From: Ophelia neglecta
Taxonomy: Eukaryota
Direction: 5' to 3'
NCBI GenBank assembly: GCA_965285935.1
Contig: OZ260664.1
Span: 85,870,001 to 85,934,000 of the forward strand
Length of the DNA stretch: 64,000 nt
Within the stretch, counting starts at the first letter, position 1. Each line of letters opens with the position of its first letter. A program made the translations under genes and the position numbers. A model generated the notes under the pieces. The model made no database searches and was not told where the DNA came from. It saw only the letters and a program-made list of their open reading frames with translations. This document shows positions 131 to 61,757 of this stretch, one piece after another.

Positions 131-3100
131 TTAGGTGGTTTTTTTGGCGAATCTGAGTTGAACGTATGAAGCCAAGAGCAGGCACATGGATATGGAGACA
201 AGTGCCACTTCATTTTTCCATAAATCCCAACTGGATCCGTAGTCGATTTCCTGATGGCGTAAGTATTCATTTCCTGCGTGAGCATTGGGTTTGCTATAGA
301 ACAAATTATGATCAACGTAAATAAATTACTGATAGTATATTTAACCTAATAATGAAACGTAACGTGGGTGGTGAAATCAACTTGATGCAAGTTATATCAG
401 AGAGGATGAACCCTGAATCAAATAATGCGTGGTCAATAATCCTTCACAAAACTATAAACAGTATTTAAAACTACATGGATAATAGTATATACAACAAGTA
501 TATCGTAATGTCAACGATTTTCCTTAGCATAAACGTTTATGTATTACAACTTATCATTTTATGCACTGGTAATTTTCATCGGAGTTGGAACCTGACTAAT
601 CACTGTTTTCTTACCATGAACATTTGACGCTTTTAATAGAAGTTTGATTCATATTGAGAGGCTACACTTACTTGCTGAGTAAACAATCATTTGACTAAAA
701 CCTGCCTGAAAGACCATCTATATTCAGACGGCTTGTGAATTCAACCATTAATACGAAAATTATCTTCCACCCTTTCAATGTTATATAATCTGTCGAAACA
801 AACAACCTCCATAATCAGCAATTTGCAGTCCATCCGTTGCTTCCAAGTTTCAATTTATAATTTATAATAAGCATGTGTCCCCATGTACACTTACCAATAC
901 GATGTTCCGTTTGTATAGTTACAAAACGCCAAGTTTTCCATTTCATTGATCAGGAGAGCCTGCAGAAAATGTGTTCATGTTATTACTTAAAAAGGTAAGG
1001 TATTCTGTATATATTCCCATAAGCTATAACTTGTTACGGAGAACAGTATCACCATCTGTACGTAAATCATGTAATTTTTTTTTACTTTTTACGGCATGAA
1101 TTGAACCCAATACACGGATGTTAGGTGGTTAAACACGGTAATTTTTAAAAAAGGGAGTAAATAGCGTACTTATTAATTTGTAATAGTTTATTCAGAAGGT
1201 CATTTAGTTCTATTTCGCAATTGTTCCCATAAGAAAACATTATGGTATACGCGATTACACATGGGAATGTGAAGATAAATATATCGGAGAAGGTTGTCCT
1301 ATTGTAGCCTTTCATATATTTTGAAACTTACGTTAATGCTGTATCTGAAAATACTGATATATGACACCCATCGAATCCACCATCCTACTGAAGACAGTTT
1401 GACGAGTGTTCCACCAAATACCTGAATGTGGACGGATATTCTATATATTTGGCTAAGGCACTCTACTGTTTATCATTACATTATGTTTTCTATTACCAAC
1501 TTATAACCTTTAACAAATCCATCGAAACTTATAAATGACTGAAAGAGGATATGGAGGTAGAATTACTCAAGGATATGATATAAATCTGCAAGCAAAGACA
1601 CATATAGAGCTTCAAGCCGCGGGTAGCGCTGTTTTAGAGCTAAATATATCCCTAATAGTAACGATATGAATGCAAACTGATTGCCACCGGGATCATATCT
1701 GTACTAATAACGTAATTCGTGTGTTCCGAAAGCCTGAACCGGATCGGGACCCAAATTAGGGTAATTATAACATTGTGGTTCTCGCGCCACAGCCGTATGC
1801 TGGTCTTTAATCAGGTTTCTCCAAACACTTTGTTTTAAAATGCATTTAAATATTAAGATAGTTAAAACCATAAAGCCAATATATAGCATATTGACATATA
1901 AAATTTGGTTTCAATACTTGGCAAACCATGGCATGACCCCGTCTTGACCATTTCATACTATGCTTGCCTCTTTTGACTCACAACGTACTCACCATCATAA
2001 AAACGAATATCAGCGCCACCAGCAGATAAGCAATCTCAAACCGTTTGATTCTAGCGCTCACACAGAAACTAACCGACGAGGCTCCAAGAGTAGTCAAGAA
2101 AATGGTGAGAAAGTACACGAAGAACTTAGCTGCGTTCATTCGGAAACCTATGAATATTCAATTGCCACTTGTATTAAAAGCATGAACGAACAGTTATAAC
2201 AGATACTCAATTTTATGTTGTTTGGTGTTTGCCGTAAACAACGCTAAGATATAGATTAAAAAAATTTACCTATCATGAAGTATGAGATTAAAGAAAACAG
2301 TAAAGTTGGCTGCAGTCGCATCGGTATAATGTCGCATACAACTTTGGAAACGAAATATGCAAAACATCCATAAAAGCCAGCCGATTGTTCATGCCTAAAT
2401 AATACAAAAGTTGAACAAATTAATGAATGACTTGATTGAAAATTATGTGTTTGACTGACAAGAGTATTCACAGAAGTGATTACACATTACAAAGTAAATC
2501 CAGGGAATCATACTTAAAGACAACTCGTTCCCGAATAAACACTCCTACCGCTGACAAGTTTTGAAAAGTCTCAGTCATAACGATGAAGAAGACGGCTCCA
2601 GCCCTTTAAAAAAAAATACTATCTAGTTAAAATAAACAACCCAACGTAATTATGAAGTATTTGGTCGAACGCAGGCATTTTGTGTCGGCTTTATGGCCAC
2701 GATTGTAGTGAAAGTGGTCTTTTCCGGTAGCATTGATATCTCACCTATTTGGAATTCCATGTATTATGGTGTCGTCCAATTGAAAGTAAATTCCCCCTGA
2801 CAGAAGGGCAAACACAATAACAACACATAACTGAAAGTAATTCAATAAACCACGTGAGAGCACCAATAAAACAGCCAGGGAGAATAATGATGTATTAACA
2901 GGTAAAATAAAGAAAGTATAAAGGTTTTGGTTAGTAAGCTTTCTGACCTCATAACAATAAATACTGACCAATTTACTTAAAACCTTTGAGATGGCAAATA
3001 GCAGGAGCCAATATCACGGGTATGGTCCAGTAGGTAGTAAAAAGACTATATTAGAAAATAAAGTTGGAATCAGTAGCGGGATATTTCGATCACTCATCAC

Positions 3101-6100
3101 AATTTGCTGATAGAGAACATTAAAAAACATAATATCTGTTGATCAATATCTTCTCAGCTGCGGATTCCTTTTGTGTTAGGTCCAAAATAATGGAAGATTC
3201 CTAATTATTGATTGCCGTGGTCTGCAGAAATAAATGTAGATCTTAAACTTGTAAAAACAAGTTCATATCTACTTTTTTGTAATTGCAATACACTGCAATA
3301 ACCTATATCAAATAGATAATGGGTATCCCATAAATCGGTGCATTGGTCATGTGTCAGTTTTAAATACCAAGTAGCCAGGGGTAGAATGTTCATCTGTATA
3401 AAGGTTCTGCTTACCACAATAAGAAGTTAATTAATAGTGTGTACACACCTGTGTAATGTATGCTGAACGATTTCGGAAGATATTCTGTAAAATTCGCTTG
3501 GAAATATATTTGACCTAGAATGAGAAACGAAAGTCTATGGAAGGTGCCATGTGATAAGATTAAAAACACAATATAACACCATGAATTGTTATTGTACCAA
3601 ATTTAAACGTTTTACACACAAGAAGTTATATTCGAACTAAAATATAGTGGGTCAATTTGAGGCCACATACCTGCGAGCCGAATGATTCTTTTTTCTGCCT
3701 TTTTCTGAGAACTTTCTCTTTCGATATTATTTCAGAGTTCTCAAAAATGCGATCCAACTGGTCTTTTTGCCTGTAGTACAATAAGAACGTTGTTTCTTTA
3801 ACCTGTCTTCACTTTTAACTTCACTCGCTGAAAAGTATATTTTAAGTTTACTGTGTTCACAGTCTCCCAGAACTCTAGTCTATTCTGTCAGTTACCCCTA
3901 CCCCAGTTTTACAACAAACGTTTATAGAGCGCCCCAGTCTAGATATTCTAGTCCTTGAGAGTTCCGGTCAGGTAATTATTGTTTACTGCTCCCTCGGTCT
4001 CTCCCTACTAGTACGTATAGTCGCCGGAATGATTTTTATATTAAAGGCCTGTTTCGGTCTTAACTCGTATCTCAGATTAAAATTGGATTTAAGTATTTAT
4101 TATGTATTTACTTTCAAAGCAGGCTTTCTGGAAGCAGGATTTGGTCTTAAACCTAGCTATGTTAGTCTTAAACTTAGGCTTGGTCAATGGAAACACCGCT
4201 TAACGCCATCTCAGCTAATCGGTAATAGGCTAATATAATCCGCACACTTAAACTTCTAGAAACGCTTCTAGAAACTGGGCCCGGGAGTTTTGAGTAAGGT
4301 CGCGCAGTAGTCCCATACTACTGGTTAACAAGCACTGAGCTAGTTCATACGAATATTGACATTATAGTTGTCTTGCCTGTAATACATTTGTGAGTTCTTG
4401 AAAGTTTCCTCCAGGGTGTTGGCAGTGTTGGCACGTTCGATTTCGCATGACCTTTCCAACTGCTTGTAGGCAGATATCGCCGGTATTTCCAGATTTACTG
4501 CAGACGATGGTGAATTTGGATAGGCTTCAGCCTGACCTGAAGGCAATATCAAATCCAAGAGTTTCAGGATATAAAAAAATGCACTTCTCAAGACGAGCAT
4601 TCAAAACAACATCGGTTTGTCTTTCATTGTATGTTTCCCTAAGCAAGGGTTGCAATATATAAAACAAGGATTACAGCTTACTTACTGGCAAATATATATA
4701 CTTAAGCCGAAGCTATTATGCCATTTGATGTTGTAAATAATAGTGTTGTCCGATCCAACATTTTATATTATTCCTGACTTTATTTGATTCAAACGGATTA
4801 TTGACTATGCTTTTAATGCTTAATTCCGTTGTTACTATATTGTACTATTATGTTATGATGTAATTCTATTTATTAAATGTTAAACAATTGGCTAACATAT
4901 TCAACGTTTATGGCTATATGACAAAGAAATGAAGATATTATTTAACATTCGTTAGTTGTCTCCGTAACCATTTATTGATATCGCATATCACAAACCAAAA
5001 AAAAATGTTGGTCTTCTTCTTACCCGACCCGATTGCAGTCGCATTTGGCTTGTTAATGATGTCAAGATAAAAATCTGCCGGATTGTCATGTTCCTCACAT
5101 TCATATCCTTTAAAAAAGAAACCAATACATGTCAAGATTTATGCAATTTGGCCTTAACATTACTCTTTACTACTAATTTCACATAACTACTATAAATGAC
5201 CTGTAGCGGGTGGTTCTTTAATAATTTGTACTGAACACCAAAATAATAACTTTTAACTGAAAACGTATTGATTTTCTCAAAATAAGGGCAAGCAGGTCTA
5301 ACATGTAACTGTATACAGCTGTTGGATAACTGCGAAGCTAGTCCCATATGCCTTTATTGTTATTTAGCAAGACTCTCTCCCCGCTTACACAATGACGAGC
5401 ATATGTAACGTTCTTTTATGAAATGCACGAGGCGTTCAACGGTAAGGTGGGTCATATGCTACGGCGCTGGCAATTTTCGTTTGCTTGCAAATCACCTCTA
5501 TTAAAACTCCATATTTTTTCGATCGCTATCGACGCCAAGTAACTTGATCTGAATTGGATATTGACCCTGTCAATTTATATACCTGCCCCAATTTAGTGCT
5601 TTGTAATCATGGCAATGTTTAGGCCGACCCTGTAACACTACTCCAGAAAAGAGATAATTTCAAAGACGGACATGATATTAAAGCTGGGCATTAGGGAACG
5701 GGATAACCCATGACTATATACCCTTCTCTGGAAATTTCTCCTATCTTTTACAATTGAAGTATTTTGTTTAATGACCACTAGCGACTACACCAACTGTTGC
5801 GTGGGAGTATACCCACTGGTATGGGGAAGGAACGTCTACCAATATGTTGCCTAGTTAGCTGGATCCCTACTTATGCAATGTCTTAATATGAACAAAAACT
5901 AGTTTTAGTCTAAGTAATCACATATTATGACACAAAAAAGACACCAGTACATAGCATTCACGTCTTCGGTAAAATTAAGGAATGTCTTTGAATAAATATA
6001 ATTACACGTAATAATTTACTGAAAAAAGAGCCCAGTCAACGCTGTGTTTCTTGGTTGAAAGCGGTAGGTATCTATATACATAACAATAATTTTGCAGCGT

Positions 6101-9100
6101 TATGAATCCGTTCTTCAAAAATAAAAAGATAGTAAAGAACTATGTGGCCGGTTTATCTGTCCATCCGTCTACTCACCTAAATATGTTACATTTATCAGAA
6201 ATAGTAAGGTATATTTACCATTCTCTTTGAAGTACGCTATGCTTTCATCTGCAGGCCCATGATATGTTAACTTTCCCATAGACAAGAGTGTGATTTGATC
6301 AAATAATTTGAAGATGGAATAACGCGGTTGGTGAATAGAGAGAATGATCGTATGTCCAGCATTCGCTAGTCTGAAATGCAAAATTGAACATGGTGTAGCG
6401 TTTGGGAAAATATACCTTAGATAGGATAGATGCATATTTATATACAGTTTTAAAACTCGGACAGCAAAAAGAAACGATAAGTCTCGTGGATGATGTGGCG
6501 GAATATGCTAGAGTAATTTTTTAGTAATAATTAGCCTTGAACCTGGTGGTACGGCACCTTTGCAGTGTATTAATATAAAGAGCAAAGCTGTAACATCCCT
6601 ACGTCTTAAGTGTGTTAAGCAGATCAATGGCGGTGCTAGCATCCAAGCCGGTCGTAGGTTCATCAAGAACTATCACTTTTGGAGAAATCACGAGCTCCAT
6701 GCCGATGTTCGTTCGCTTCCTCTCTCCCCCAGACACTCCGCGAACGTCAATAGAACCCACCTGACGTGGAATAGAATTTTTCATAACGCTTATGAAGCTA
6801 ATACGAAAAGAAACTACACATATATATACATATAAACTACATATATAGATATAATGTGTTTTTATTCAGTAGACAAAGAATACAACATATGGATGTTATA
6901 TAAATCATGTTTCAGTCCAAACCTAAGGCTACTGATTAGACTTGAAGGTGCGGAACTATGAAGCCTACAACTGTCCATAGAGCAAAAACTTGGTTTCGGT
7001 TTCATTTTATTTTTACGGGAGTGGGTAAGGCTTGTTCAGGTATACTGTTGTGTCAAATTCTCATATATATTACTCCCACTACACTTCCAGCACCTCCGCC
7101 TTTCGTTTGAGTCCTAACTAAGCCAAATCCTATAAGACTATATGCTTGCATAATATTGATTACATACAGCATATATATGCATTATATTTTTTGAATATGC
7201 AGTGGTAATAGTGAAGAGTAGTGCTTAGTCTGAGTATATCTAAAGAGCATTTAAATAATATCATCATATTAGTAAACCCCGATTATATTAATACATCAAC
7301 GGTTTTCGGTTTTAATGATTCTTACTTTACCTTGGTATCTTTACAATCTCTTAATCCCAGGTCATGAAGAGTTTTCTTCACCAGTTCGTTTTTCTTCGGT
7401 TTTGATATATCTGGTACTAGTCGTAGATTTGCAGAAAATGCTAAGTTTTCCTTTACTGTCAAGGTTTCATAAAGGAAATCATCCTGTAAACGAGAAGTTT
7501 GGATGCCACAGATGCACATAAGTTTCTTTGCATTGAATTTGCGTTATTTGCCTAACTAAGGCTTTTAAACTGAACACATCTGTCGATTCTCATATCTAAT
7601 TGAAGGTAAATTTCTCACCTGCACAACATATCCAATGCGACGACAAATAATCTGGACGAGGTTTTCCATCAACCAATATTGTGCCCTTCTGTCCACATGG
7701 GTGCTTTCGGCCCGCAATAATGTCAAGTAGTCTGGTAAATTTAAAGAAAGTCGATAAAAAAGTTGTTTACAAAAATCCTAAATGGACAGTGGAACAATTA
7801 TATATATTACACTTCCCTTCACCACTTGCACTTATCAAGAGTAGGATTTTGAGGGCCCTGGAGGCATATCCCGTTTAACTTTGGGTGCATAAGGGAAGGT
7901 TCATAATTCTTTGGCTTTGGCTTTAACTTGAATAAACTTAATTGTTATTTTCATCAATTTTCCCAATAGCTTATTGTCATAACTTACGAGGTTTTTCCGC
8001 ATCCCGTTGGCCCCAGAATCGCATTCAAACCACCGGGAAACCTGCAGCTACAATCAGTTTGAAAAGAAGAATAGTAGAATGTAATAGGATTTGAATCCAT
8101 CAAGAGTAGTATTTGACGCCAGAAAAACTTGGAAAAATCGTCTGAAAACCGAAAAATTCTGTGTTATTATCAAAGCGATAAAATTTCATTTTTTTATTTC
8201 AGTGTTTTATACCCAGAAACATAGTTGTTATAATACAAACTGTCTATATCAGTAAGGGTTTGACAACATGTGCTTTACTTGCACTCAATAGTGTAGACAA
8301 AATAAATGCAATAATAATATAAATTCCTCCCCCTATGTTCAGCGACGTTTATAATTCATTTCCGCTGGATAATAAGCATCACAATGTACAATTCCGATTT
8401 GTTTACCCAGCCCCGTGCATGTTTTGTTTCAAACAACAAGTTATCTGTCAGGCCGATAACAAACTTATTCATTGCTTGAGTCTAAGATTACTCGCCACAT
8501 ATACACATATTTTATCATCCAATGATAATGCCAAACTTCCTTATGGTTAACCGCCCGTTAAAAAAATAAGAGCAAATACATACCAATGTTTTGGTGGTAA
8601 ATTGGTGTAAATTATGATGGATTAGGTATGCATTTCCTAACCATTAAGTTCAATATTCCAAGCAATCAATAATATTTTTATGTGCAACCTAGATATCAAA
8701 TACTTCTGAATATTGCAATTGCCTACATGATATTTTCCAATATCATTCTCCTCGATTTATTCTTGCCAATTTCATATGACACGTCATGTAATGTAACTTC
8801 AGCCCCTATCGCCTCCGTGTCTCTGTGCGAAGGTGAAGCAATCTTTATGGTCTCGGAGCTTTTTTCCTGAACCAATGCCGTCTCTTCGTGTGGGACCTCT
8901 TCTCCGGGAGTAGCCCCATCAAATTGCGTCTCGGTGACAATTTCCACGCTACATTCATCTCCTGGCAAGTTACTTTAGTCTCTTCGTCTACTGTCACAGG
9001 AACTTCAGCCTCGTTCGTCTCTATGGTTTGTCCCGTGGTAACTTCGATGCTTTTCGTCTCCAAGTCTTGCCCCGGAGTAAGTGCAAAGCCTTTAGTCTCC

Positions 9101-9102
9101 AT
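131..9102 (-). CDS. ABCG2-like (White/BCRP family) ABC half transporter, copy A; disrupted as assembled, possible pseudogene
   Basis: Exons in transcript order: ~9102/9184-8727, 8047-7988 (Walker A GPTGCGKTS), 7731-7619, 7483-7331, 6760-6603 (signature VSGGERKR, Walker B VLDEPTTGLD), 6370-6219 (H-loop SIHQPRYSIF), 5107-5024 (NPADFY), 4536-4377, 3770-3671, 3514-3449, 2830-2745, 2603-2514, 2394-2270, 2147-1993, 1421-1332, 959-895, 293-131 (stop). NBD precedes TMD, as in ABCG. Exon 3 is 113 nt versus 115 nt in copy B (frameshift), and the first exon also shifts frame near 8970. Confidence 0.9.
4025..4282 (-). mobile_element. Partial MITE-like interspersed repeat in an ABCG-A intron, related to the 12155-12388 element
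   Basis: Its reverse complement begins GGGCCCAGTTTCTAGAAGC and contains ATTAGCCTATTACCGATTAGCTGAGA. These match GGGCACGATTTCTAGAAGC and ATTAGCCTGTTGCCGATTAACTGAGA at 12154-12220. Confidence 0.5.
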
Positions 9103-9559
9103 ATTGTGTCCTTTTATAACTTTTACACCAACAGTCTACGTGTCTTGGCTCACTGGCAATTCGTCGAGCGATGATGCATCGAGGCTAACAACTAGTTTAT
9201 TTCAATAACCAGCGTGACAGGGTGTCACACAAAAACTTCCCTTGGCTTGATATGTATTATACCAGGACAAACATAGAGGTTATGAGAACATCTAAATTGA
9301 AATGAAATCAATTCTTATTCCTGGTATGCATATACATTTAAAATAAACAGCATGTGACATTTAATACAGGTAAATAGGACAGAAGCACACAGGAGCAAGG
9401 GTGGAGCCCGAAGTTTGACATGGCCATAGCTTAACGACTTTTTTTCAGGACGGCCATAGACTAGTCAACAATATGAACAAGCTTCTGAGATGCCATCACA
9501 TGTTAAAACAATAATGTACAATACAATTTAGAGTAAAGTTACATGATTTCAGACAAATT

Positions 9560-10620
9560 CACGCTGGTGTTATACTTCAAAACTCAAATAGACGCCACTG
9601 TCTTCAAATATGCAGGGAGATTATTCCAAAGCCGACATGCCTGGTACGAAATGTGATCTGACCAGTTTTACCCCTACACCTAGGAAGTACCAAATCATTT
9701 AAACTACTGCTTGTCACATATAGGTGCCTCCGTCTTAACTTATTGAAAACAGTTGATGGGTTAAGAGGGACAATATCATTCAAACACTTAAACAAGAACC
9801 AATGTGAGATGGTTCACTCTGCTGTTAATTTTTAGCCAAGACCTGTGAAACACCAAGCTGGGAACCAGGCGATAGGTCCAAAACAAAACTAATAGCCTTG
9901 TTCTGATGTCTAGTGCGTACATATTGAGTCAATCCATAATAAAAAAATTACATTCATAATCAATGAATAGTTGCGTAAGAAAAGAACACAAAAGTTTTCT
10001 AATGACTTGATTAAGAAAAGGCTTTTTTTCCAAACAAAACTATCTGGAAGTTCTTTACAACTTGCATACCCATGGGCTCTGCATTTAGGTTACAATCAAA
10101 GAGTCCTCCCAGATAGTTTGGAGTTGTCTAAATTTTATGTATACACCATTCCAAATAATGTTGAAACTGACCATTTTACCTAATTTTCTTTTCCTTACAA
10201 AATATATGCAGTCCGTTTTACCGAGATGCAGTGACACTTTGTTTTTAACTAGCCGACTGCTAATTAAATTCAATTCTGACGTTCAAGTGGCTTCAGTTTC
10301 AGCTATATCCATCACCACCAGAGCAGAGTCCTCAGCAAACAACACAATAAACCAATTACCTGATGATACCATATCATTCACGTACACCAAGAAACGACTA
10401 GAATAGAGCTTTTAGGTACCCCAAACTCTTTTAACCCTGATCTAGTGCCAGATACATCAACACACAGTTTGACAACACAAGTAAGTACGAAATCACTGTT
10501 TACAATGGTCCTCTGCTCCAATCGCCGTTGATTTACTAATCCTTACGTTGTGTTTGACTGCTTCAAAGGCCTTTGGAGGTTCCCATCGAAGTTCCCATTT
10601 TGATTCCATGTTTGTAAATT
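9560..10620 (-). mobile_element. Degenerate 3' fragment of an L2/CR1-clade LINE (RT C-terminal part), related to 12833-16555
   Basis: Broken frames give NKVSLHLGKTDCI and MFKCL...RGKTGQITF. These parallel NKLSLHLGKTESI and MFKCL...QGNTGKHTF in the 12833 ORF. Many stops and frameshifts. Confidence 0.75.
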
Positions 10621-12154
10621 TATGTTTTGCCGTATTTAGTAATACGTAAGTCAATGTTATTCCACATTATATCATATGTTATTGCTAGAATGTTTCTCGT
10701 ACTCAAAGCATGGCTTATGTTATTGCAATGGCACGTGCAACATGGGTTTTTCAGACTGGACTTAAATGCAGACATGCATAGTTGACTCTGCCCGAGGATC
10801 GCTGAAAATACGTCTATTGTGTCAATATTGGCCACATAATAAAATTGGTCTGTCTTCAAAAGTAGCAATGACCCGCAATTTAGAACATGACATGTAAAAT
10901 AAGGTCGAATTGCAGATACACATGTCTTCTTGGACACTCGGTAAAAGGAGAGCGAGTGAGAGGCGAGCTAAAACTAGAACACTTTAAGGTGATGGTGTGG
11001 CGTCGGTATAGATTCATGGGGTGTACGCTCAGCCTGAGGCTGAGTCCAGGCTTTTACGACATATTTGCCTGCACCAGGACAGCACTGCCCTACTGTGCTA
11101 AGCGACGTATAGGAGCCCTTATCAGCCAGCATCCCGGGTAACATGTCATTTGCTTGCGCATTCGACCGGCTTGAGAGAAACTAATCGTATTGGAATGTTA
11201 ACTATTTTTCTTTACTGATTAGAAACGAAAGTTGCTGTGAAACCAAAGGAGAAAAAGGCAAAACACGGTAGTGGACACCGGGTAAGTGAATTTTGTTTCG
11301 CATATCCCAATAACTGTAAAAAGAATCATAGTATCACATCATTCCATTTTGTTGCATTTTAATAGTTGCAAGACAACAACCATGGAATGTTGCTATCTTA
11401 GGGGCGGGTGGGAGGTTGGGTGGGGGTGGTGTAGAAGAAGGGAAGAGAGGGCGAGGATAAGGGAGATAAACACGATACAGTTTACAGGGCTTCTTTCATG
11501 CGTTAAATCATTGGATTGCTCACAGTAAGATAATTCAAATTGAATGATTAGCTCTTCCCTTAGACAGTTAAAATGATATAATGGTCATTTAGTCACCATT
11601 TCCGAGTAATGGTGTTTTCCGGCAGAGTCAAATATTATTTAAAAAGCTGATTTCACATGCAACTAGGAAAGATACATGCCCGTGTTGTTGAAATTATTGA
11701 CAGACTGGCTTCCTATTCACCTGAAATTAGGAAAAAGGGAGGTATGAATATACTTGTAAAGTAGAATTATTTGGCTTCCAAGTTCTAGTAACTGGCGTTC
11801 CCGTCAATTTCAATTTGAACTATTTGTACAGAGGAACAACACACGTATCTTGATTTGGTCTGTGTGAAGCAGTGTCTTCATCTACATCACGACTCATTCA
11901 TGTTCATGACAAATACCCGAAAATGTTTTACTTTAAATTTGGAAAGTGAAAAACATCATACCAATGTAAACATTGGACTATAAATAAACATGAACAGTTG
12001 AAGTGGGCGGATTCCAATGGTTTAGACTAGGCGGATGTAAACATATGCTATGCTCTAGGTCGAAGTTAAGTAATCTATGTCAGTCCGCATTATTTATTCT
12101 TTGTGTTCGATTTTTGTATTAGCTGAATCATGAAGGAGAATATCAAAATAGCTG

Positions 12155-12388
12155 GGCACGATTTCTAGAAGCCATCTTGAGTTTAACGATTAAATTAGCC
12201 TGTTGCCGATTAACTGAGACCGCTTTTTTTCGTGTTTTCATTAACCAGGAAAGTTAAGAACAAAATGGCTAAGGTCAAGACCAAATTCACGTCCCAAAAA
12301 TCCCGATTAGCAAGTTAAGAATAATTTAGAACTTGAATCCTGATTTTAGTCCGAGTTAACAAGTTAGACACTTTCCTGAGACTGGGCC
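12155..12388. mobile_element. MITE-like non-autonomous DNA element, possibly PIF/Harbinger-type
   Basis: Imperfect terminal inverted repeats (GGCACGATTTCTAGAA ... TTCCTGAGACTGGGCC), flanked by CTG on both sides (12152-12154 and 12389-12391). A related copy lies at about 4025-4282. Confidence 0.45.
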
Positions 12389-38545: not shown

Positions 38546-38630
<85 letters not shown>

Positions 38631-49600: not shown

Positions 49601-52600
49601 ATTTCTTTACCAAATGGCTGTACATTCAGAATGCCTTGATTTCAGCCAATTTTTAAAGCAAATTCATTGACACGGTTTGCGATTGAGGCCTCCCAAAACG
49701 TTGGCCGAATTTTCAGCTTCATGGTCACAGCGATATCACCGAAATTGAAGGCCTTCACGGACAATATCTCGGCTGCCATTCTTAAAATCTGAACACTCGC
49801 ATCTCGACCGTTCCTTATGTAGCCCATTCATTTGTGTAGGTGTTGACACGTTTTTCATAACTTGCCATCGCCAACTTGGAGTAGTATTGCAGTATGGAAT
49901 TGTCTCCACACAGTGAGTTAATGTTACGTCATGACAAGTAGTGCAGGATCGGATCGTTTATACACCAGAATGCACTGGTTAACATTATTAAGAGCCATTG
50001 TCCGGCCACTTTTGAAGAAACCTGGTCTGGACAAAAACCTCTTGCAGAATTACAGACCTGTTTCAAATTTGCCCTTTGTGTCAAAAATTATTGAGAAGGC
50101 TGTTGCCGGGCAGATTGAGTCTCATTTGAATGTAAACAATCTCACCGACCCGCTTCAGTCTGCCTATCGTGTCGGTCACTCGACTGAAACAGCTCTGCTG
50201 AAGGTTCATTCAGATATTGCTGAAGCCCTGGACAGGGGTAACAATTATGTTGGATCTCCCCGCAGCCTTCGACACTCTTGACCATGGCATAGTGTTGAAG
50301 CGACTCGACCATATGTATCGCATTCGAGGCAACGCCCTAGAATGGGTAAGATCTTATTTAGAGGGACGGAGGCAGGTTGTGGCCGTCGGTGGCAAGTAGT
50401 CATGCGAGAAAACTTTGTGTTTTGCAGTGCCACAAGGCTCAGTATTAGGCCCGAAGATCTATTGCCTTTATTCCAAGCCGGTAGCAGCAATTATTTCTTG
50501 CCATGGCTTCCTTTATCATATCTATGCTGACGATTCTCAGCTTTACATAATTTTAAAACCTAATCAGGATTTGACATGTGTTGTTAGACAGGTAGAGAAT
50601 TGTGTAGCTGACATCCATGCCTGGATGAACAACAATTTGCTCAAGCTAAATGGCAGTAAGACTGAAGTAATATTTTTCAGTCCCAAATCTCGACCTTTAT
50701 CAACCATTGATGTTTTATTTAAATTTGAATCTACAAATATTCAGCCAGTGGCAGAGGTCAGAAATCTGGGTGTATTTTTTGATTCCCATCTTAGTATGGG
50801 TGCCCAGGTGCGTGCCATAGAAAGGTCCACCAATTTTCAGTTGCGGAATCTCCAGAGGCTTCGGAGATACATGTCTGCTGACACTAGTAAGACCCTTTTC
50901 CAGGCGACAGTTATCTCTCGCCTGGATTACGGCAATGCTCTGCTGATGGGTTTACCTAAAAGTAGTCTTGTCAGACTACAGAAGATACAGAATAGGGCCG
51001 CTAGGCTGATTTCTCTTATACCCATGCAGCAACATATTACTCCGGTGCTTAAGGAGCATCACTGGCTCCCGGTGGAGCAGCGAATTAAGTATAAGTTGTT
51101 GCTCTTGAATCATAAGTCAGTTCATGGCCGGGCCCCGCCATATTTGTCTGGCCTGGTGAGTCATCATACGCAAAACCGCACTCTAAGGTCTTCGTCCATG
51201 GCACTTTTATCTATCCCTCGTGCCACCACAAAAACATATGGAGATCGTTGTTTTAAACTGGTGGCACCAAGCCTCTGGAACCAGCTTCCTGGCCCCCTGA
51301 GACACATTGAGTCAGAATATGTTTTTAAAAAGGATCTAAAGACATTCTTGTTCAGACAGGCCTACAACTAGTCAATCTAGCTCTATAAATTAAATTCTGT
51401 ACAATTATTGTTTTTAACTGGTGGGGAATCTGTTCTTTTAGATAGAAATTTTAGTACTTCCCGCATGGCCTGGTATCATGAATCTGGTCACAGGCCTATA
51501 TCTAGTCGATGGTTAATTTTTAGACTGTAGTATTTGTATTATATTTCCAGTAATTTAAACTGTATATACTTTGATGTAAAGCGCTTAGAGCTTATAGGAT
51601 AAGCGCTATATAAATTTAATAAACATAATCATAAACATAACCATACCTCGGGAAACCCCTTTATAATGTTATGTATCATATCAATTGAACATACATAATA
51701 AACACATTCTTAAGGCAGTATTTCTTCGTTATATTAGTACGCATTAGAACTTGTCTTGGTAATTAAATAATATAGGTTTTAGATTTTGCCTTGTAAAAAA
51801 CACTTTCTCTTCGATTTTAATTATTTACAAGTGCTTTTTAAATTAAATTAGTTTTTGCTTTTGAAGGCTGATGACCGTGGCCAATTTCACTTGGACTCAA
51901 TTTTCCTGCTCAAGTTCTAAGACAATATATCATGTTTGTTGTTTCTTTTGTGGTGTGCTAATTTCTGGTATTTTATTACTTTTCACCTGGGCCTCTTGAG
52001 TGATGTATTTGGTCCTGTGGTTGGTATCTCCCGATGCTGTCAGAACTGTTAGATGGGCGGTGCTTCATTTATGATTTTGCGTTGTCAGCCGGCTATCCAC
52101 TCAGGTCTTTTTTCATCCTGATAATACTTAGCTACTTTGGATTTCATCAAAATAGCATGCATGAAAGATTAAGAATACCATATCACATAACAGATGGGAG
52201 CTGAGTGTTTGTGTGTTTATGTGTGTTGAAGCGAGGGGTGTCTTGTAAAAAGCCTGTTTGTTATCTTTCCTTTTCTTCGCAAAAGTATGTATGAATTGTT
52301 TATTTTCTAATTGGGACCATTCTATTCTTCCAAAATCGCCTATGTGTTCTTGTATTATTTGGAGAAAGAGAACACGGTTTGTGAGAAGGTGCTAATTCTG
52401 CCGAAAGGTGTTCATTTTAATTGAATATAGCCACCTTCAAGACAATGCTAATTTAAAACCACAGAATACATATTTGACATTAATATTTAAAACACTAAAT
52501 GTCTACATAAAACCGGATTCGGAGTTGTTTTTCTTTATTGAACCATATAAAAAGTAGAATGTTTATATTTCAGGACAAATGAATAATGATAAGGCGGGGC

Positions 52601-55600
52601 TGTCCGAGAGAGATTTGTCAGAGGTGTCCAGTTATACCAGTACCGGAATCGCTCGAAGTATGCTGTCCAACCGAGTGTCTTACACCTACAATCTCCAAGG
52701 CCCTTCTATGACCCTGGACACGGCCTGCTCGGCGGGACTCGTGGCGGTCCATCAGGGCATCCGCTCTATCTTGTCGGGTAAGATACATTTTGCGTGTTAG
52801 GGTATGCACTAACATCGATGTATTCAATAACAAAACGCACTTTTAAAAAAGAAACTAAAATCTGACCTACGTGCTAACCAGCTGGTATGTGTATATATTT
52901 GTAATGATTTTACCACGCCGGAAATATATCTTAATTGCTTAAGAGTTGATAAATTTACACTAATGCAACCTGCATCTCGATTTGGCACGGATAGCTCCTT
53001 GGTAAATAGTTATATAGGCGTTTTCTACAAGAAAAATTCCGACCATGAAATAGAACCAAATAAAATACAATATTGATACGGCTGCTTTCTGCCAAATAGC
53101 GCCATGTTACGTTGAATTTTTTTTTCCAATTATATGAAGGTTACGTAACAACTCCATGGTGGACACTGGACCATGTACACTTAAATAATCGAGTTTTTAG
53201 AAATCCAAAATATCGAGTTATTAGTTCGCAATGATGTGCTTATATAGATATCGTAATTTCGAGTGAAAAATGTCCCTTGATAACCTATTAGGTTTGCGTG
53301 TACTCTCGCACAAGAAATTACCTTTTAATCCAACGCGACCAAGTGGCTACCCTACGGCTGTCTGAATCAAACTATACTAAAAATGTATTTCAATAAAAAT
53401 ACATGCCGCCATACATTTGTTCGGAAATTATAACCATTTTTAATCAACCAGGTTCGTATTATGTATAAAGTGGTAATGTCCAAGTAAGATAGCAAAACGT
53501 AATGCAATGACATATATGAAGTATAAAATGAGTTCTTTAAGCGCCCTATGCAATATCTACCAGCCAGATAATTAGGGTATGCTATCGCTGTTATCGCTGA
53601 GAGGAGTCAGAGTTAGTGTTGGATACCGCATTATAATAGTTGTACTAAACTTGCCAACAAAATTTTCTTATTTGATTTAATCATTTCCAGGCGAATGCTG
53701 TGTATCAATATGTGGAGGTATTAGTCTCATACTCTCCCCATCACCATTTGTAGGCCTAAGTAAGGCCCGCATGTCTTCAGAGACCGGAACATGTCACGCC
53801 TTTTCTGACAAGGCCGATGGCTACGCCAGAGGTGAAGGGTGCGGTGTTCTCGTCCTCAAATCAGTCAAACAGGTGGATTATTTACTGTGATACTTAGAGA
53901 TATACAAAGTCCCAACGTATTAAAATGAGAACTTTTTTCCATTTATTCTAACTAAAGATACATTTGAAGTCGTTCTGACTATTTTAAGGCCAAAGAAGAC
54001 GGTGATTACATATGGGGTTTCATTGCATCAGCGGTCAACCAGGACGGCCACACTGTCACACCGATCACTGCACCAAGTGTTACCATGCAGGAGAAATTAC
54101 TAAGAGAGCTGTATGGAAAAATACAACTCGAACCTCAGGTGGTTCAATATGTGGAAGCACACGGTAGGCTACATCACGCGAGGGGCACTATGGTGGTCTG
54201 TAGAGAAAGAAAAAGGTTGCTAAAGTTGTCGTAAAAATGTGTCATATTATCACATTCTGGCGGGGCACATACGCCGATAGTTGTCCAGCTCCTTTTACCA
54301 TTGTATACTTCTTGTTTGGTTTATTACTATGATGTGTTATGTGAATTGTCACCATTATTTCCACAATGATGAAAGTGTACTTCAAGTGCCATTTTATAAC
54401 AAATATCCATCAACTATAGAATTGAGATATAAAGATAAAATAGCATCGGCAGCAGAAGTCAGAAATCAATTAATGGGTCCGTCACGCAAGCTTATTGTTT
54501 AAACAAACTCCAATAAGAGCCACAATAAATTAATGCACAGCACCATTCCAGCTCTTTTGATTAGCATGTGGCCAATTACATTTTATCACTATTTGTACTT
54601 AGTGTTTTCGTTGCCGGACCTTTCGACCTATATCAAAGCACAGCTATACAATTATCGTTTTGGTGTGTCTGTGAAAGTAAAAAAATATATAAATTGATCC
54701 TCAGAAATCTCGGGGAAGATGGCCCGTGCACGGTAGGTTTAGTCACTCCTATTTTCAAGGAAATTTGGTCTTAACATTGATTTTAGTTTACTTGTTTTCT
54801 ATAATTAACGGATTTCTGCTGTACACTATAGAACCTATATTCAAATGCGTGACCAAAAAAGCACTACTTTCATAGGTAAAACCAGGACCCATGGAAAGTA
54901 CGTCCTATTGTTCGACACGTGACCCATGTTTCCGTGAATCTACATTAAATGTAGTATCCTATCGATTGAAAGTGTTCAGATACTTGTTCTTTAAATGACA
55001 TTTGTTTTATTTTTCAGGGACTGGAACACGCGCAGGCGACCCGGTAGAAGTCGGTAGTCTGGGCCGTGTTATCGGCGCCGCCCACGACAAGAAAGATCCC
55101 TGTTGGATAGGTTCTGTGAAAACCAATATCGGTCATACAGAATCAGCGGCCGGTATTGCTGGAACAATCAAAGTTTTGCTGATGATGAGGCATGGTAAGA
55201 TCGTTCCGTCTTTACATTTTGATGTGCCCAACCCGAACATTGACTGGAATTCGTCAAACCTTGCGGTACCTACGTCGGTGATGCCTTGGCAAGTTAACCC
55301 GCAGGGATTACGCATCGCTGGCATAAATTCTTTTGGTTTCGGTGGAACAAATGCGCATGCTATTCTTGTGCAAGAAGAACATTTTCCAAAAACCAGCGGT
55401 CTGGGCGATAAAGGTAATCATGACCTGAACATAGTTACAATTTCGGGAAAGTGTCAAAATGCTTTAACACAATCTATGGCTGACCTTCTCGCTGCCATCA
55501 AATCAGGGCAAATTCAAAAGAATGTTCTTTCTCTGAGCTACACTTCAACTGCTCGTCGACGCCATTTCCGCTTTAGAAGAGCATTTACTGTTCACGACAC

Positions 55601-58600
55601 TTTAGAACTTGCAGCGCAGTTAGAAAAGAGGGCAGAAATGCCGACCCATACTTCTTTTAGCAAAGATAAATCCATTGTTTTTGTTTTCGGTGGCATGGGC
55701 ACTCACTGGTCTGGGATGGGAATGCAACTCATTCAATGTGAGAGGGTTTTCCGTGAGAAAATGGAAGAGATTGATTCCATTATACAGCAGTGCGAAGGTT
55801 GGGGGCTCCTTAGTGCAATACAGACTGGTAGCGATCTGTCTGACCCAACCGTAGGTCAGCCAGCTATCTTCGCTATTCAGGTTTCTTTGGCCACTCTTTG
55901 GAGGTCTTGGGGCGTCCTTCCCCGTGCTGTGATTGGCCTCTCCGTTGGAGAAATTGCCGCAGCTCACATTGCGGGTAAACTTAACCTCTCCGATGCAGTC
56001 AAGGTGATCTGTACTAGAGGCAAGCTCCTCAGCCAAGTAACTGGTGGAGCCATGCTTGTCATCGGGAACATGGACGTTTCCGCTGTCAAATTGTACATTA
56101 GTCAGTTTGGTGGCACGGTTGAAATAGGTGCACAAAATAGTCCAATAACCTGCACCATATCTGGCGATGAAAAACAAATTGATGCAATCCACAACGAGCT
56201 GAATTCTTTGAAAGCGACAGAAAACCCTCGCTTGTTTCTCAGAAAACTTCCGGTCAATATCGCCTTCCATAGCCATTTTATTGATTCGATTGTACAGCCT
56301 TTAGGAGAACAACTCGCACAGCTATCCGAAGCACATCTTGAGAATTCCACCGACATCATCTCATCAGTCTCTGGTAAAAAGGCAAGTACTGGGGATTTCA
56401 CTACAGCACACTACTGGCAAAAGAATGCTCGACAAGGGGCGGTGTTCTCTCAAGGTTTACAAACACTTACAAAAATGGTTAAGAATCCTATTTTCATCGA
56501 GATTAGCCCTAAACCTGCTTTAGGACGCAACATCACTGAAACTCTTAACGGTCAGCCGCCTTTAATAGTCCCATCGATGAAAGAGAATGAAGAATCAAGA
56601 ACGATTATAAAATCGCTGGCCGCGATTTATGCAAGTGGGGTTAACATTGCATGGAAGTCATTTTGGGGTAATGTCAAAGCGGAAATATCAACTTTCCCTC
56701 GATATCAATACCAGAGAAAGAGACTGTATAACGAAACTAAATCCGTTACAAAATGGCGATTGGGACAAAATGGAACAGATTGTCACAGTACACGTGAACA
56801 TGACACTGGCTTTCTTGTGCCAGAGGGGGAGGGTTGGCTCTGTCTGATTAACAAAGAAACAACGCCTTTTGTTTACGACCATCGACGCACCGGGAAGCCA
56901 TTAGTTCCCGCTGCAATGTATGCCGAGATCGGTTTGTCAGCATGTATTGCTACTTTGCAAAACAAGACCCATTTGAAAAACAGCACCACAAATGTTTCAC
57001 TAGTTAACGCACTTCACATAAATCAGGAAGATGCAGAATCCAAAATCCATGTTTTAGCTGACCAACAACCTGAGATGCCATGCAATTACTTGCGGTTCTT
57101 TATTAAAGGAGGCTCAATGCTGCTGGCAGAAGGTGATGTTCAGTTTCTCCAAGAAGAAGATACTGGTGATATATTTGACATTGAAGCCATCAAAGTAAGA
57201 TGTGCTGAGTACTTTGAAGCTGAACACTTATATGACCTACTGGAAACGCACAAATACACATATGGTAAACGTATGCGAGCTGTGGAAGAAGGTGTCAAAA
57301 ACAAGACTGAGTGCTTGACAAAAATTGTCCTCCCTAAGGACGTCCATCATGAGAGGAGGGGTGTTATCATTCATCCAGCCATTTTGGACTCCTGCTTTCA
57401 ACTGGTCGCCTTGCTGATTTCCCAGGACGCTCGGAAATCCCTGGCTGTTCCAGTCGCGCTCCATGGACTGAAAATACTAGGTGACCCTATGAATGCAAAA
57501 TGGATTTACATGAAGGTTATTTTTAAAACTAAATCCCAGTCAGAGTTTTCTGCGCATATCCTAGATATCAATGGCCATGAGCTTGCAAAAGCTAGTCGCA
57601 TTATCATTAAATCTATCGATGAGGTTTTGCTGCAGAATCCGTCTGAACTGCGTTACATGCAAGGTTGGATACTAACGAAACGTGACGCAAAAAAGGACCA
57701 GACTAATGATTATATAGATGAATCAGCCAAGAACACTAACATATGCCATATCTATGCCAACAGTGAGTTGAACCGAGATGTGACCACATCGTTAACAGGG
57801 CAAGGGGCTTGCGTAACGCCGATTGCGTGTCGTAATATCACAAGTGACATTGAGAAATGCTTCATAGAAGTTAGTCCAAAGGCCATTTTGTTTTCCATGG
57901 CTATACGCCCACAAGCTGCCACTCAGTTCACTGAACCTGACCTGGCAGTGTCCGAGGAATGTTGCTGGTGTCTCATGAACATTTTAAAGTATTGTTTGAA
58001 ACGCAAATACATCCTACCAGTATTTGTACTGACCAAGCACGTTTATTTGCGACAAGACCAGGCACCTTGGGCTCAGCTGCATGATTTACCACAACTGAAT
58101 GCCAACTCGAGTCTGATAGGCTCCGCACTGTGGGGTTTGGCCAGAACCGCTGTTCGTGAGGGTCTCCGAGTCATCTGTATTGACATGATTCGCTGTAACC
58201 TAGAAGAAATCAACAAAGTTTCTTCTCTGGTAATGAGCGACACAATGCCTTACCCTGAGTGGGTTCTCGCTGATTATTATTCATACAGAAATGAGTTTCT
58301 ACCCTACATGGGACCACCCGCTCACAACCATAGAGTCATACCCATGCGACATGACGATGTTGTACGGATTGTGTCTAAAACTAGTCATGGAAGTATAACA
58401 GTTCAACAAGATGTTGTGGAACTAAAGCAGGAAGACACACATGGACATGTTAAAGTAGTTAGTGCCAGACTCCATGATAACAGCTGGTTTCCTTCTTACT
58501 GGAATGACAATCCTCATGACGCGTGCACCATTAATGACGAGGCTCAGACAATATTGGCTTTGGATTACACGGCAAAGATGTTGAATCCTGATAGGCAAGG

Positions 58601-61600
58601 CGAATTTTTCGGCTGTCAGCCCATACCACTCGTGGAAGTAGCTCATGTAGATAGCAGAACGCTAGTTCCTGTATCGTTGCTCCCCAGCGACCAGCCAATG
58701 CTTTCCCTCTGGCTTGTTTCTTGGGATGTTTTACACAAACACGCCGCCGGAATTAATCACATTCGGGTTCACAACCTGGCTAACTGGCATATTCTGGAAT
58801 ACTGCATTAAGTCTGTTGCACAAGCTCTGACCTTTAGCGTTGAAGAAGACACGTCTGTTATTGTACCATTAGCAATAGTCTTCGCATGTAAGAACATGGC
58901 GCCCAAAGCGTTACATTCCATATTGCAAACCTCGGAAAAGGCAATAGTTATAACATCAGATGCCAATTTGAGAGTTGTCTGTGGATCATTAATGGACGAA
59001 GGGCATTTTAGAAATGTAACTTTCTACAACCATGTAGATTTATTTGTGCCCCATCAATTGGTTGAGCTGGTCCCAAATTTCAAAGCGTGGCTGCTAAAAT
59101 GCCCCCTTCCCAAAATTCCACTGCAATGCAAAGTCATTAAGCCAAAGCCAAACGAACTGCGAGAAGGCTTTGTTATTAATGGAATAAAAAACCAAGGGAA
59201 CAACATTGTTATGGAATTACCACAGAGAGACATTAGTACAATTCCAAGAATTACTTACCAAACACAAACTCTGTTCAGATCAAACGGTTGTTACATTTTG
59301 GTGGGTGCCAACAAAGGGCAGGGGTTAGCATTTCTAAAGCAAATGGCCGCACTTGGCGCTGGTGTTCTGATTGCTTTGTCACGAACTCCACCTACGAAGG
59401 CAGTATTTGAAGAATATGAGCTCATGTCAAAAGAAAACAATGTTCAAATTCATTGGGTTCAAACCGACGCTACAGACAAGAACAGTCTCATTGAGGCATT
59501 CCTCACCATTGACAGGCTGCGCGGAAAATGCCCTATAAGAGGGATATTCCAAGGAGCTGTAGTTCTCGCTGATGCGTTGGTGCAGAACTTAACATACGAA
59601 CAATTTGTCTATGCTTACAGGGTTAAAGTGCATGGCACATTTTACCTCCACTCTCTTACACAAGATATGGAATTGGATTACTTCGTGTTGCATTCATCCA
59701 TCACTGCTATATTAGGGAACATAGGACAGACAGCGTATGGGGCTGCAAATGAATTTATGAATTGTTTTGCTAGTTACCGGCGGTCTATTGGTCTCCCTGG
59801 CCAAAGCATCAATTGGTCGCCTCTTAAGTATGGGGTTATTCAGTGGAATACAGCTGCAAAGCGTCATTTAATGTCTGTTGGCATTGTTCCTTTAGAGAAT
59901 GATGAAGTGTGGTATTGCATGAAACATGCCTTGCTAGGCGATCTTACATACGTGACCTATGGCAAATTTGACCTGGAAAAATTGATAACTAAGGGTCACC
60001 AGGAAGCCTTTGGTATTTCAAGTAGACTGATATTTCTTGCCACAACTGCCTCTCTAAAAAGGAACGATCCCATAGACTCGCAAGTTATGTCTATCAATCT
60101 GTCCAAAATGGCTTCTGAAGCACAAGCGTCCAAATCAAAATCACAGTGTTATATTGAAGACATTATATCTGAACAGTTGTCAATCAGTTCACAAGAACTT
60201 GCTGGTAGCCACGCATTACCATTGGCCGATTTGGGATTCAATTCAATGGATGCGGTATATGTTGCTAGTAAAATTCAGCAAGATTTCAACATCCACATTG
60301 ACACCGATGGAAACTCTAGTATCGATAGTATGACAACTGATTTGTGGTCTAAGTTTGAAGGTTTGCAGACAGAGTCAACTGATGCTAAACCGTTTGGGCC
60401 ATTTGAACAGCGAATATTGCAACTTGTTCAGAACTCGGCCATGTATCGCCGTCACATGTCAAGCTTCTTGACGTTAGAGATTACAAACTGTTTTTTGAGC
60501 CCAGACTCCTTGGTAGATATGATGAAGGGCATCATTGAAAAGCTACCACATTTGAGGACTTCCACCAGAATTAACCATGAAGGCCGAGTTACCTTGATCA
60601 GGAGAAGTGTAGACAGTATTAACGTTCAAGCTGCGAGCGTAACAACTATATCCCTGGCTAAGATGCGAAACCATCTTATTTTTCTTGCAAACGATCTCAA
60701 TGTCTCGACGGAAACACCTTTTAAAGTCCAGGTTCATAACAGTTACGACAATCACCAGAGTATGTTCCTGGGAATGGTGTTTCACCGGGTTGTGGATGAT
60801 TGCCACACAATTCACCAGATCTTGAGTTTACTGATCAACGCCATGCAGCGCAAACCCCAACCTCTACCATTATACATGGTCAAGGATGATGCATATCGAA
60901 TTCAGGAAATAGTTGCTGAAAGATATTCAGAATACTTTTGGCGCCACGTCCTTCCAGATATGTATGAGATAGTTAAAATGCCGCAATGCTTTTTCCATTC
61001 ATCAGATAATAGTGAGAAATTTGACGGTAGCATGTTCAAAGTGCTGCTTGATGGTCGCAGCTATGAAAGCGCGTTAGATGCCTCAATGACTGCAGAAGTC
61101 AGCTTGAATCAGTATGTGTTGGCTTTGTTCCAGCTGTACATTCATTTCTGTTCTGACGCAAAAGTTGTTATAGTTGAAATGACTATTGATATGCGTGAAA
61201 TTTTACCTAAGGATTTCCGCGATTACTCCGGAAACTTGGACAACGAACTGCTTGTTGTTTCAACAATTGATCCCTCTATTAATTGTCAAACAAGACTATT
61301 GCAGGCACAGGTATTTGAACAGTGCAAACATATTCAAAAATGTGTCCAACATGGACTTTTCCCAAACCAATCAATGCTTGATATGATCCAATTTCCAGGC
61401 AGTAATTCAGGTAAATCGGTCCAATTCGCCTTTGAGTATCGCCAAGGCCACGAAACATGCGATGCAACTGAACTAATGGACATGGATGTGAGAGTGGTGG
61501 AAATTATACCTTCCTCTGTTGGAAAACAAACTCTGAAGTTGTATGTTGTTGAGAACAAGTCAGCTAAACAGCTTGAGCTTTATCTATTATCTGGCCCAGG

Positions 61601-61757
61601 CTATTTTTCAGAGTATGGTGTCAAAGCCTTTGCCACAGGTTTCCAGGCATTTTTAAATAACTGCTCGCTAAGTATGCAGCGTCCACTCAAAGAATTCAGT
61701 GTAGCTGTGGAGAAAGAACATGGAGGTGTTTTGACAGTGACAACTGACACCATTTAA
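46690..61757 (+). CDS. Type I iterative polyketide synthase, copy B, apparently intact, about 2556 aa (KS-AT-DH-psiER-KR-ACP-C-like)
   Basis: Exons 46690-46898, 49295-49455 (DPQQK), 52574-52777 (DTACSAG), 53691-53872 (DGYARGEG), 53989-54163 (EAH/G), 55018-61757. All introns are GT-AG and the total of 7671 nt is in frame. KS Cys-His-His present; AT GLSVG and IAFHS; [12 protein letters not shown] and HPAILD; KR VLAD and YGAAN; ACP GFNSM; terminal domain FHRVVDD. Confidence 0.95.
48668..49138. repeat. ~37-bp minisatellite, about 12-13 diverged units, in PKS-B intron 1
   Basis: Approximate consensus TGTAACGCGTCTATTCGAGACCTATAGCCTATGGTAC, repeated head-to-tail without spacers. Confidence 0.9.
49990..51640 (+). 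mobile_element. 5'-truncated, frameshifted L2-like LINE in PKS-B intron 2
   Basis: RT motifs split over three frames ([37 protein letters not shown]; stop at 51371). The 3' end has a GTAAAGCGC...GCGCTATATAA stem-like motif followed by CATAA(A/T) repeats. Confidence 0.9.

Follow-up and report, generated by a model that had tools for sequence, protein, structure and literature searches.

In fungal and bacterial polyketide clusters, an ATP-binding cassette (ABC) transporter, often of the ABC-G/PDR type, or an exporter of the major facilitator superfamily (MFS) is found beside the synthase, for export or self-protection. To our knowledge, animals still offer few examples of gene clusters that make small molecules. 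Here, we describe a stretch of 64,000 nucleotides from the genome of Ophelia neglecta (GCA_965285935.1, contig OZ260664.1, chromosome C7 in our analysis, positions 85870001-85934000; hereafter, the window), in which two polyketide synthase (PKS) genes each lie head-to-head with a gene for a half-transporter of the ABCG family. As in the microbial clusters, synthase and transporter stand side by side, and microbial pairs, too, are often divergently transcribed. Unlike them, the Ophelia locus is animal nuclear DNA with introns and consists of only two types of gene; the window has neither tailoring enzymes nor a pathway regulator (its other open reading frames (ORFs) of at least 100 amino acids match no Pfam family except for pieces of retroelements). 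The Ophelia unit has also been amplified as a family of pairs, and not assembled as one multi-gene cluster.

Associations between animal PKSs and transporters have been described before. In sea urchin pigment cells, pks1 and the gene for the White-type transporter ABCG11 are expressed together (PMC7455242); this is an association by expression, and no genomic linkage is described in the sections of PMC7455242 and PMC11574130 available to us. The urchin and Ophelia systems both combine an animal PKS with an ABCG half-transporter, shared cells being a feature of the urchin, but the transporters belong to different subfamilies and the urchin genes are without co-duplication. A genomic neighbourhood has been reported for PTCHD3, which lies next to nearly every homologue of the clam PKS MpES (PMC9894158), although this synteny was used solely to argue for an animal origin of the synthases and not to address function. 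The PKS clade is the same as that studied here, and the immediate neighbour is likewise of a membrane lipid-transporter type, but in Ophelia it is an ABCG2-type ABC transporter instead of a Patched/RND-type protein. Finally, a broad survey of animal PKSs, including mollusc PKSs with C-terminal condensation domains, does not contain the words “transporter” or “synteny” (PMC10764717). These mollusc synthases are of the same architecture class as those of Ophelia, with homologues at 25-37% identity, but they form a different subclade, and the loci examined have no ABCG within 10 kb. We found no description of an animal PKS-ABCG2 pair in the literature.

Two genomes that we examined match the published neighbourhood. 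In Owenia fusiformis, a sterol-sensing gene of the Patched/NPC1 family (L053:1298-4580) lies head-to-head with a PKS homologue at a distance of 4-5 kb, and in Glandiceps talaboti a Patched/NPC1-family gene (L010:1943-5571) has the same orientation and distance, with a second one located downstream (35598-36768). Together with the PTCHD3 report, these neighbours indicate that this PKS clade tends to adjoin a gene of a membrane lipid-transporter type. They also make too strong the statement, found in an earlier reading of the window made from its letters alone (hereafter, the original prediction), that animal PKSs are usually described as stand-alone genes. No Patched gene was found near any of the 12 PKS copies of this family in the Ophelia neglecta genome; in the Ophelia lineage, the partner is ABCG2.

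Synthase and Transporter Genes Duplicate as Pairs

A comparison of open frames, a motif scan, and Pfam gave the gene order ABCG-A, PKS-A, ABCG-B, PKS-B, with the transporters on the minus strand and the synthases on the plus strand, and the coordinates of all four genes (Table 1) bear out the order and orientation first proposed. Three open frames of the window are conspicuously long: two PKS exons of ~2250 codons each and the ORF of a long interspersed nuclear element (LINE). When the two halves of the window were compared by their open frames, 16 co-linear blocks were obtained on the minus strand (ABCG) and 6 on the plus strand (PKS), and the Walker A, signature, and Walker B motifs of ABC proteins occur in two sets, both on the minus strand. 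The large exons of PKS-A and PKS-B share 62.6% protein identity, and blastn between the two cassettes detects similarity only in exons, in agreement with the matching exon layouts and non-aligning introns noted originally. Exon borders were set by conserved AG/GT sites and phases were checked from exon to exon; sequence and fold searches of the spliced genes were run per exon.

The original prediction also suggested a check of the flanks for more copies, and these do exist. The genome contains 12 PKS genes of this family, all of them on C7. The two-cassette unit is present three times with a spacing of ~120 kb, which accounts for three A-type and three B-type PKS copies, while older pairs are found elsewhere on the chromosome, where further PKS copies lie at 93.93, 95.91, 90.42, 16.88, 17.22, and 17.46 Mb. 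A divergent, head-to-head ABCG2-like partner accompanies 10 of the 12 PKS genes. Probing with two ABCG exons revealed 14 ABCG2-like genes in the genome, all with the same 16-exon layout; 11 are linked to a PKS and 3 are unlinked, on three other chromosomes. The 11 linked genes flank ten PKS genes, two of them being in tandem at 17.47 Mb. The adjacency of the two gene families is therefore conserved in 10 of 12 paralogous units, this being conservation among paralogues only.

The histories of the two gene families also match. Synonymous divergence (dS) is nearly the same for both partners in the four pairs of units compared: 0.039 for ABCG and 0.028 for PKS between the 16.9 and 17.2 Mb units, 0.97 and 1.05 between B and the 93.9 Mb unit, 1.07 and 1.00 between A and B, and 1.57 and 1.54 between B and the 16.9 Mb unit. 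In a tree built on 529 columns, the linked ABCGs are monophyletic (100/100) and separate from the unlinked ABCG2-like genes, and the PKS and ABCG trees are compatible, in that forcing either tree to adopt the grouping supported by the other is not rejected by the approximately unbiased (AU) test (p-AU 0.24 and 0.10). Because partner dS values match, the linked ABCGs form a single clade, and the trees are compatible, we conclude that the pair was duplicated as a unit, as had been proposed for the two cassettes of the window. The A-B duplication is old, since dS is ~1.0 for PKS and ABCG alike.

Both members of the pair have been maintained. The ratio of non-synonymous to synonymous divergence (dN/dS) ranges from 0.18 to 0.37 for PKS and from 0.08 to 0.28 for ABCG, which corresponds to purifying selection on both genes, and the large exon remains open, over 2247-2327 codons, in nine PKS copies. 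The same head-to-head pair persists in no fewer than five old lineages (dS ~1 or more), distributed over three chromosomal regions. The pair thus has a single origin, has been duplicated as a whole to 10 or more places on one chromosome, and has had both of its genes kept under purifying selection. PKS-ABCG copies are nevertheless born and die, cassette A of the window being an apparent recent loss.

The Two Cassettes of the Window

The claim that both genes were retained after duplication holds for cassette B, where the frames of PKS-B and ABCG-B are open, and fails for cassette A, where both genes have disabling lesions. ABCG-A keeps AG/GT at all 15 introns, but its frame is lost from exon 3 onward. 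A deletion within about 7632-7649 shifts the frame inside the nucleotide-binding domain, at a place where all other ABCG paralogues, including both A-type sisters, read ...RPD(N/Y)FRxxIGYV(V/I)Q in a single frame. No ATG was found as a start codon for ABCG-A, and the frame of exon 1 stays open upstream of 8824. In PKS-A, the lost splice donor of intron 5 sits inside the intron-split HGTGT active-site motif, and the sole nearby GT, one base upstream, shifts the frame. The spacer between the two genes is ~3.8 kb longer than in the sister A-type copies, an excess that fits the intact LINE; this insertion is probably private to the window copy, and it is possibly a young, active element. As judged from the sequence, ABCG-A looks like a recent pseudogene, and the three private events (the LINE in the spacer, the loss of the PKS splice donor, and the ABCG frameshift) give cassette A as a whole the look of a freshly dead pair.

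The sequencing runs that cover the locus are DNA runs from one sample. Contigs from three of these runs show no indel over 6500-9000, but the pieces do not bridge the lesion site of ABCG-A. In all three runs, the read-derived contigs stop at 7638 and resume at 7667, beside the frameshift. This gap may be due to heterozygous sites, in which case the other haplotype might differ there.

In cassette B, 4409 bases separate the two start codons (42281 and 46690), in accordance with the ~4.4 kb first estimated, and the spacer between them is a candidate shared regulatory region. The open frame of ABCG-B spans 583 codons, with its ATG at 42281 and its stop codon at 30115-30117; its least certain border is the exon 7/8 junction, which lies in the linker. 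Exon 1 and the large exon of PKS-B lie ~1.6 kb farther apart than they do in either sister B copy. A (CT)n microsatellite occupies 38541-38585, in an ABCG-B intron just upstream of the exon with the signature and Walker B motifs.

The Transporters

The transporters have the reverse topology of ABCG proteins, in which the nucleotide-binding domain precedes the membrane domain, and they contain the Walker A, signature, and Walker B motifs. Among solved structures, a nucleotide-binding exon scores 61 bits with human ABCG2, versus 29-36 bits with ABCG5/8, ABCG1, and plant ABCG25, and a membrane exon matches ABCG2 only among the PDB structures. We assign the window transporters to the ABCG2 type and not to the White type, although the contrast is an indirect one in that the PDB set compared holds no White-type structure. 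The original prediction had spoken of ABCG/White half-transporters. Human ABCG2 is the nearest solved relative, and the analogy with White and its pigments is weakened because the transporter appears to be ABCG2-type.

The Synthases

The window PKSs consist of ketosynthase (KS), acyltransferase (AT), dehydratase (DH), a spacer resembling an enoylreductase (ER), ketoreductase (KR), acyl carrier protein (ACP), and a condensation-like (C) domain, with the large exon holding everything from the C-terminal part of the KS onward (Pfam). The Cys-His-His triad of the KS is present, with DTACSA in exon 3, HGTGT split over exons 5 and 6, and NIGH in the large exon. The AT, DH, KR, and carrier domains all score above the Pfam cut-offs and contain their catalytic motifs, with variants in the AT and ACP, and the AT specificity motif is of the malonyl type across the window PKSs ((I/V)AFH). 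The AT active site reads GLSVGE (PKS-B 55900-55930, and at the same place in PKS-A) where GHSxG is usual, and the consensus of the aligned animal homologues is GQSVGE.

The six exons of these genes, with AG/GT borders, provide the spliceosomal introns expected of an animal PKS. A tree of animal and bacterial PKSs places the family of the window inside an all-animal clade (SH-aLRT 100), with the PKSs of the annelid Owenia as its sister group (support 96). We therefore classify the window PKSs as animal type I synthases of the clade to which clam MpES and the PKSs of Owenia, a hemichordate, amphioxus, and vertebrates belong.

Between the DH and KR lies a region that gave no Pfam match even at an E-value of 10 and has no GGVG motif. 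An AlphaFold model spanning DH to KR (predicted local distance difference test, pLDDT, of 71.8) best matches DH-ER-KR modifying regions, which makes an ER-like but probably inactive spacer likely; the region is probably an inactive ER-like part together with the structural part of the KR. This model matches the DH-ER-KR structure 5bp4 of a mycobacterial MAS-like PKS, and the domain order is that of LovB and MokA, the highly reducing PKSs with a condensation (CON) domain, namely, KS-AT-DH-(inactive ER)-KR-ACP-C, with the Ophelia model matching 6ad3. Unlike the LovB/MokA and MAS-like synthases, the Ophelia PKSs have no methyltransferase, identity is ~12-16%, and the second histidine of the end domain is absent.

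This end domain passes the Pfam Condensation cut-off of 30.6 bits in the window PKSs, with 37.9 (PKS-B) and 41.6 bits. In Foldseek, a KR-ACP-C model (pLDDT 70.6) matches the didomains of peptidyl carrier protein and condensation domain (PCP-C) of nonribosomal peptide synthetases (NRPSs) with an E-value of 5e-24 and a template modelling (TM) score of 0.69 by target, and it also matches a glycopeptide X-domain and the end domain of MokA (6ad3). Pfam and the model thus agree on a two-lobed, chloramphenicol-acetyltransferase-like fold after the carrier. In motif alignments anchored on the KR, the catalytic second histidine of HHxxxDG is replaced; the motif reads FH(R/S)VVDD, with R in B and S in A, and retains the first histidine and the aspartate. 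Many animal homologues in the alignment have likewise lost the second histidine. The HRxxxDD form of PKS-B resembles the inactive X-domain motif of glycopeptide synthetases. The end domain (60390-61754; the last 455 amino acids) had no match in a word-indexed search, nor at an E-value of 0.001 among 1.84 billion representatives. Because neither of these searches found a match despite the Pfam score and the PCP-C-like fold, we consider the domain very divergent and fast-evolving.

A Possible Make-and-Move Module and Its Alternatives

The two genes of the PKS-ABCG2 pair form a unit that is lineage-specific and co-duplicating, and we give about even chances to the reading in which this unit works as a functionally coupled make-and-move module. 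In such a module, the iterative type I PKS would assemble malonyl units into a lipophilic, partly reduced chain, and the condensation-like end domain would hand the chain off. An ABCG2-like homodimer, encoded by the neighbouring gene, would then clear the cytosol of this product, or of a toxic intermediate, by moving it through the plasma membrane or into a compartment for storage or secretion. Every synthase paralogue would retain a transporter paralogue of its own, and common regulatory elements would probably lie in the shared spacer of ~4-11 kb. Making and exporting a product, as the original prediction had it, is plausible and better supported than before, with linkage, co-duplication, and selection as its basis; that the ABCG exports the PKS product is pure inference on our part.

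Several observations weigh against functional coupling. Segmental duplication by itself carries neighbours along, and the recent triplication of 120 kb spans far more than the pair. The spacing of the divergent start codons varies from 3.8 to 11.2 kb across units and in no unit measured are the starts within the ~1 kb or less of a bidirectional promoter, so there is no classic promoter of this kind; moreover, a search found no conserved non-coding blocks common to the old spacers. Probing with ABCG exons revealed no partner for the PKS copies at 95.91 and 90.42 Mb, and it placed an extra ABCG at 17.48 Mb. The PKS of the third A-type unit is interrupted by two stop codons, with exons 1-6 of its partner ABCG remaining in frame. 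The end domain without its second histidine leaves the mode of chain release in doubt. Finally, the PKS-ABCG synteny that the original prediction proposed to check in related genomes was not found in distant animals, as there is no ABCG exon within the 10 kb searched around the PKS at 11 distant animal homologue loci (25-40% identity). Much of this would be expected if the two genes had been chance neighbours in the ancestor, ~4-11 kb apart, that were copied passively by segmental duplication and have unrelated functions, such as xenobiotic efflux for the ABCG. We regard this as a serious possibility, although a less likely one than functional coupling. Passive copying does not readily explain why the head-to-head arrangement persists, with purifying selection on both genes, in at least five old lineages spread over three regions, or why the 11 of 14 ABCG2-like genes that stem from PKS-linked duplication were retained instead of being lost as redundant. 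Both genes of cassette A in the window have decayed together, and the wider PKS family is linked elsewhere to another family of lipid transporters (PMC9894158), both of which also argue against chance neighbours.

The lesions themselves raise the question of whether the pairs are what remains of an expansion that was useful at one time and is now mostly non-functional. Both genes of window cassette A are damaged, the third A-type PKS has its two stop codons, the large ORF at 90.42 Mb is truncated, its C-terminal domain being undetectable, and a stray fragment of such a domain is found at 95.878 Mb. However, the nine open large exons, the complete frames and canonical splice sites of PKS-B and ABCG-B, and dN/dS values well below 1, recent copies included, make a decaying array improbable. 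The repeated units could also, in principle, be uncollapsed haplotypes or mis-joined copies, given that the three 120 kb units are just 3-9% diverged at synonymous sites, that high heterozygosity is possible in marine invertebrates, and that read contigs break near the ABCG-A lesion. There are, however, three units and not two, with differing insertions and lesions, the older pairs are tens of megabases away, and A and B of the window, at a dS of ~1, are not alleles. We take the 120 kb units to be paralogues, in view of their dS of 0.03-0.09 and their private insertions and lesions, and we consider an assembly artefact very improbable indeed.

Beyond the make-and-move module, we put forward, only tentatively, the idea that the pair is a minimal animal biosynthetic gene cluster, in which each synthase paralogue has a dedicated lipid exporter, duplication of the whole unit diversifies secreted or stored polyketides, and ABCG2 takes the role that the PTCHD3 neighbour has in other phyla. 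If this were true, it would imply as a general rule that a PKS in animals operates together with a membrane lipid transporter encoded next to it. A wider rule of use in mining animal genomes is indeed suggested by the parallel to the PKS-PTCHD3 neighbourhood reported earlier. A unit copied and kept around ten times would be a compact model for the evolution and diversification of animal chemical defences, pigments, or signals, and the PKS-ABCG2 unit could likewise be a model of how lipophilic products are handled in the cells that produce them. For heterologous expression, matched synthase and transporter pairs could be used, with the apparently dead cassette A as a natural control.

Features of the Window and Additional Observations

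Table 1. Coordinates of the features identified in the window (position 1 is its first letter), with the observations on which they are based.
Feature	Position	Strand	Description and basis
ABCG-A	131..~8974	-	ABCG2-like half-transporter, 16 exon blocks; co-linear with ABCG-B; stop codon 131-133
ABCG-A nucleotide-binding exons	6603..8047	-	Walker A GPTGCGKT 7988-8047; signature VSGGE and Walker B VLDEP 6603-6760
ABCG-A exon 3	7619..7731	-	2-base deletion, 113 nt vs 115; exon comparison among paralogues
Cassette A divergent spacer	8825..18065		9.2 kb, from exon-1 positions; 5.5 kb in two sister A-type cassettes
LINE ORF	12833..16180	+	Endonuclease and reverse transcriptase, 1115 aa, uninterrupted; Pfam RVT_1, Exo_endo_phos
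PKS-A	18066..28349	+	6 exons, 2538 codons; Pfam and exon/phase table
PKS-A exons	18066-18274, 19143-19303, 19588-19791, 20778-20959, 21085-21259, 21664-28349	+	Exon/phase table
PKS-A intron-5 splice donor	21260..21261	+	TT instead of GT; CAY G/GT (slash marks the exon end) in 11/11 other genomic copies
ABCG-B	30115..42281	-	ABCG2-like half-transporter, 16 exons, all AG/GT; exon/phase table and motif scan
Cassette B divergent spacer	42282..46689		4.4 kb between start codons; exon/phase table
PKS-B	46690..61757	+	6 exons, 2556 codons, all AG/GT, intact; exon/phase table and Pfam
PKS-B exons	46690-46898, 49295-49455, 52574-52777, 53691-53872, 53989-54163, 55018-61757	+	Exon/phase table
Reverse-transcriptase fragment in PKS-B intron 2	49931..51371	+	Pfam RVT_1
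PKS-B acyltransferase	55677..56627	+	GLSVGE (serine kept, histidine replaced); IAFH, malonyl type; Pfam and alignment
PKS-B dehydratase	56847..57566	+	HxxxGxxxxP and DxxxQ; Pfam and alignment
PKS-B DH-KR spacer	57654..59285	+	~550 aa; Foldseek top match MAS-like PKS DH-ER-KR 5bp4, E 7e-43
PKS-B ketoreductase	59286..59825	+	GANKGMG nucleotide-binding loop, YGAAN catalytic motif, B-type LAD
PKS-B acyl carrier domain	60150..60305	+	Attachment serine within GFNSM
PKS-B condensation-like domain, C-terminal	60495..61718	+	Pfam Condensation 37.9 bits; Foldseek; motif alignment

Some observations were made on the members of the family outside the window. The two tandem ABCG2-like genes beside the 17.46 Mb PKS (C7:17466794-17482724) are both complete, are 71% identical, and have a dS of ~1.7; they represent the only ABCG duplication without a PKS. 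In the 90.42 Mb PKS (C7:90422678-90427899), the large frame is shortened to 1796 codons, and no end domain was detectable in this copy. The lone end-domain fragment lies on the minus strand at C7:95878185-95878924, 34 kb before the 95.91 Mb PKS. Separately from the PKS and ABCG families, we observed that the mitochondrial COI gene (C223:4697-6037) reads TGA as a sense codon, with 8 such codons in frame, and that its nearest database fragment is 96% identical.

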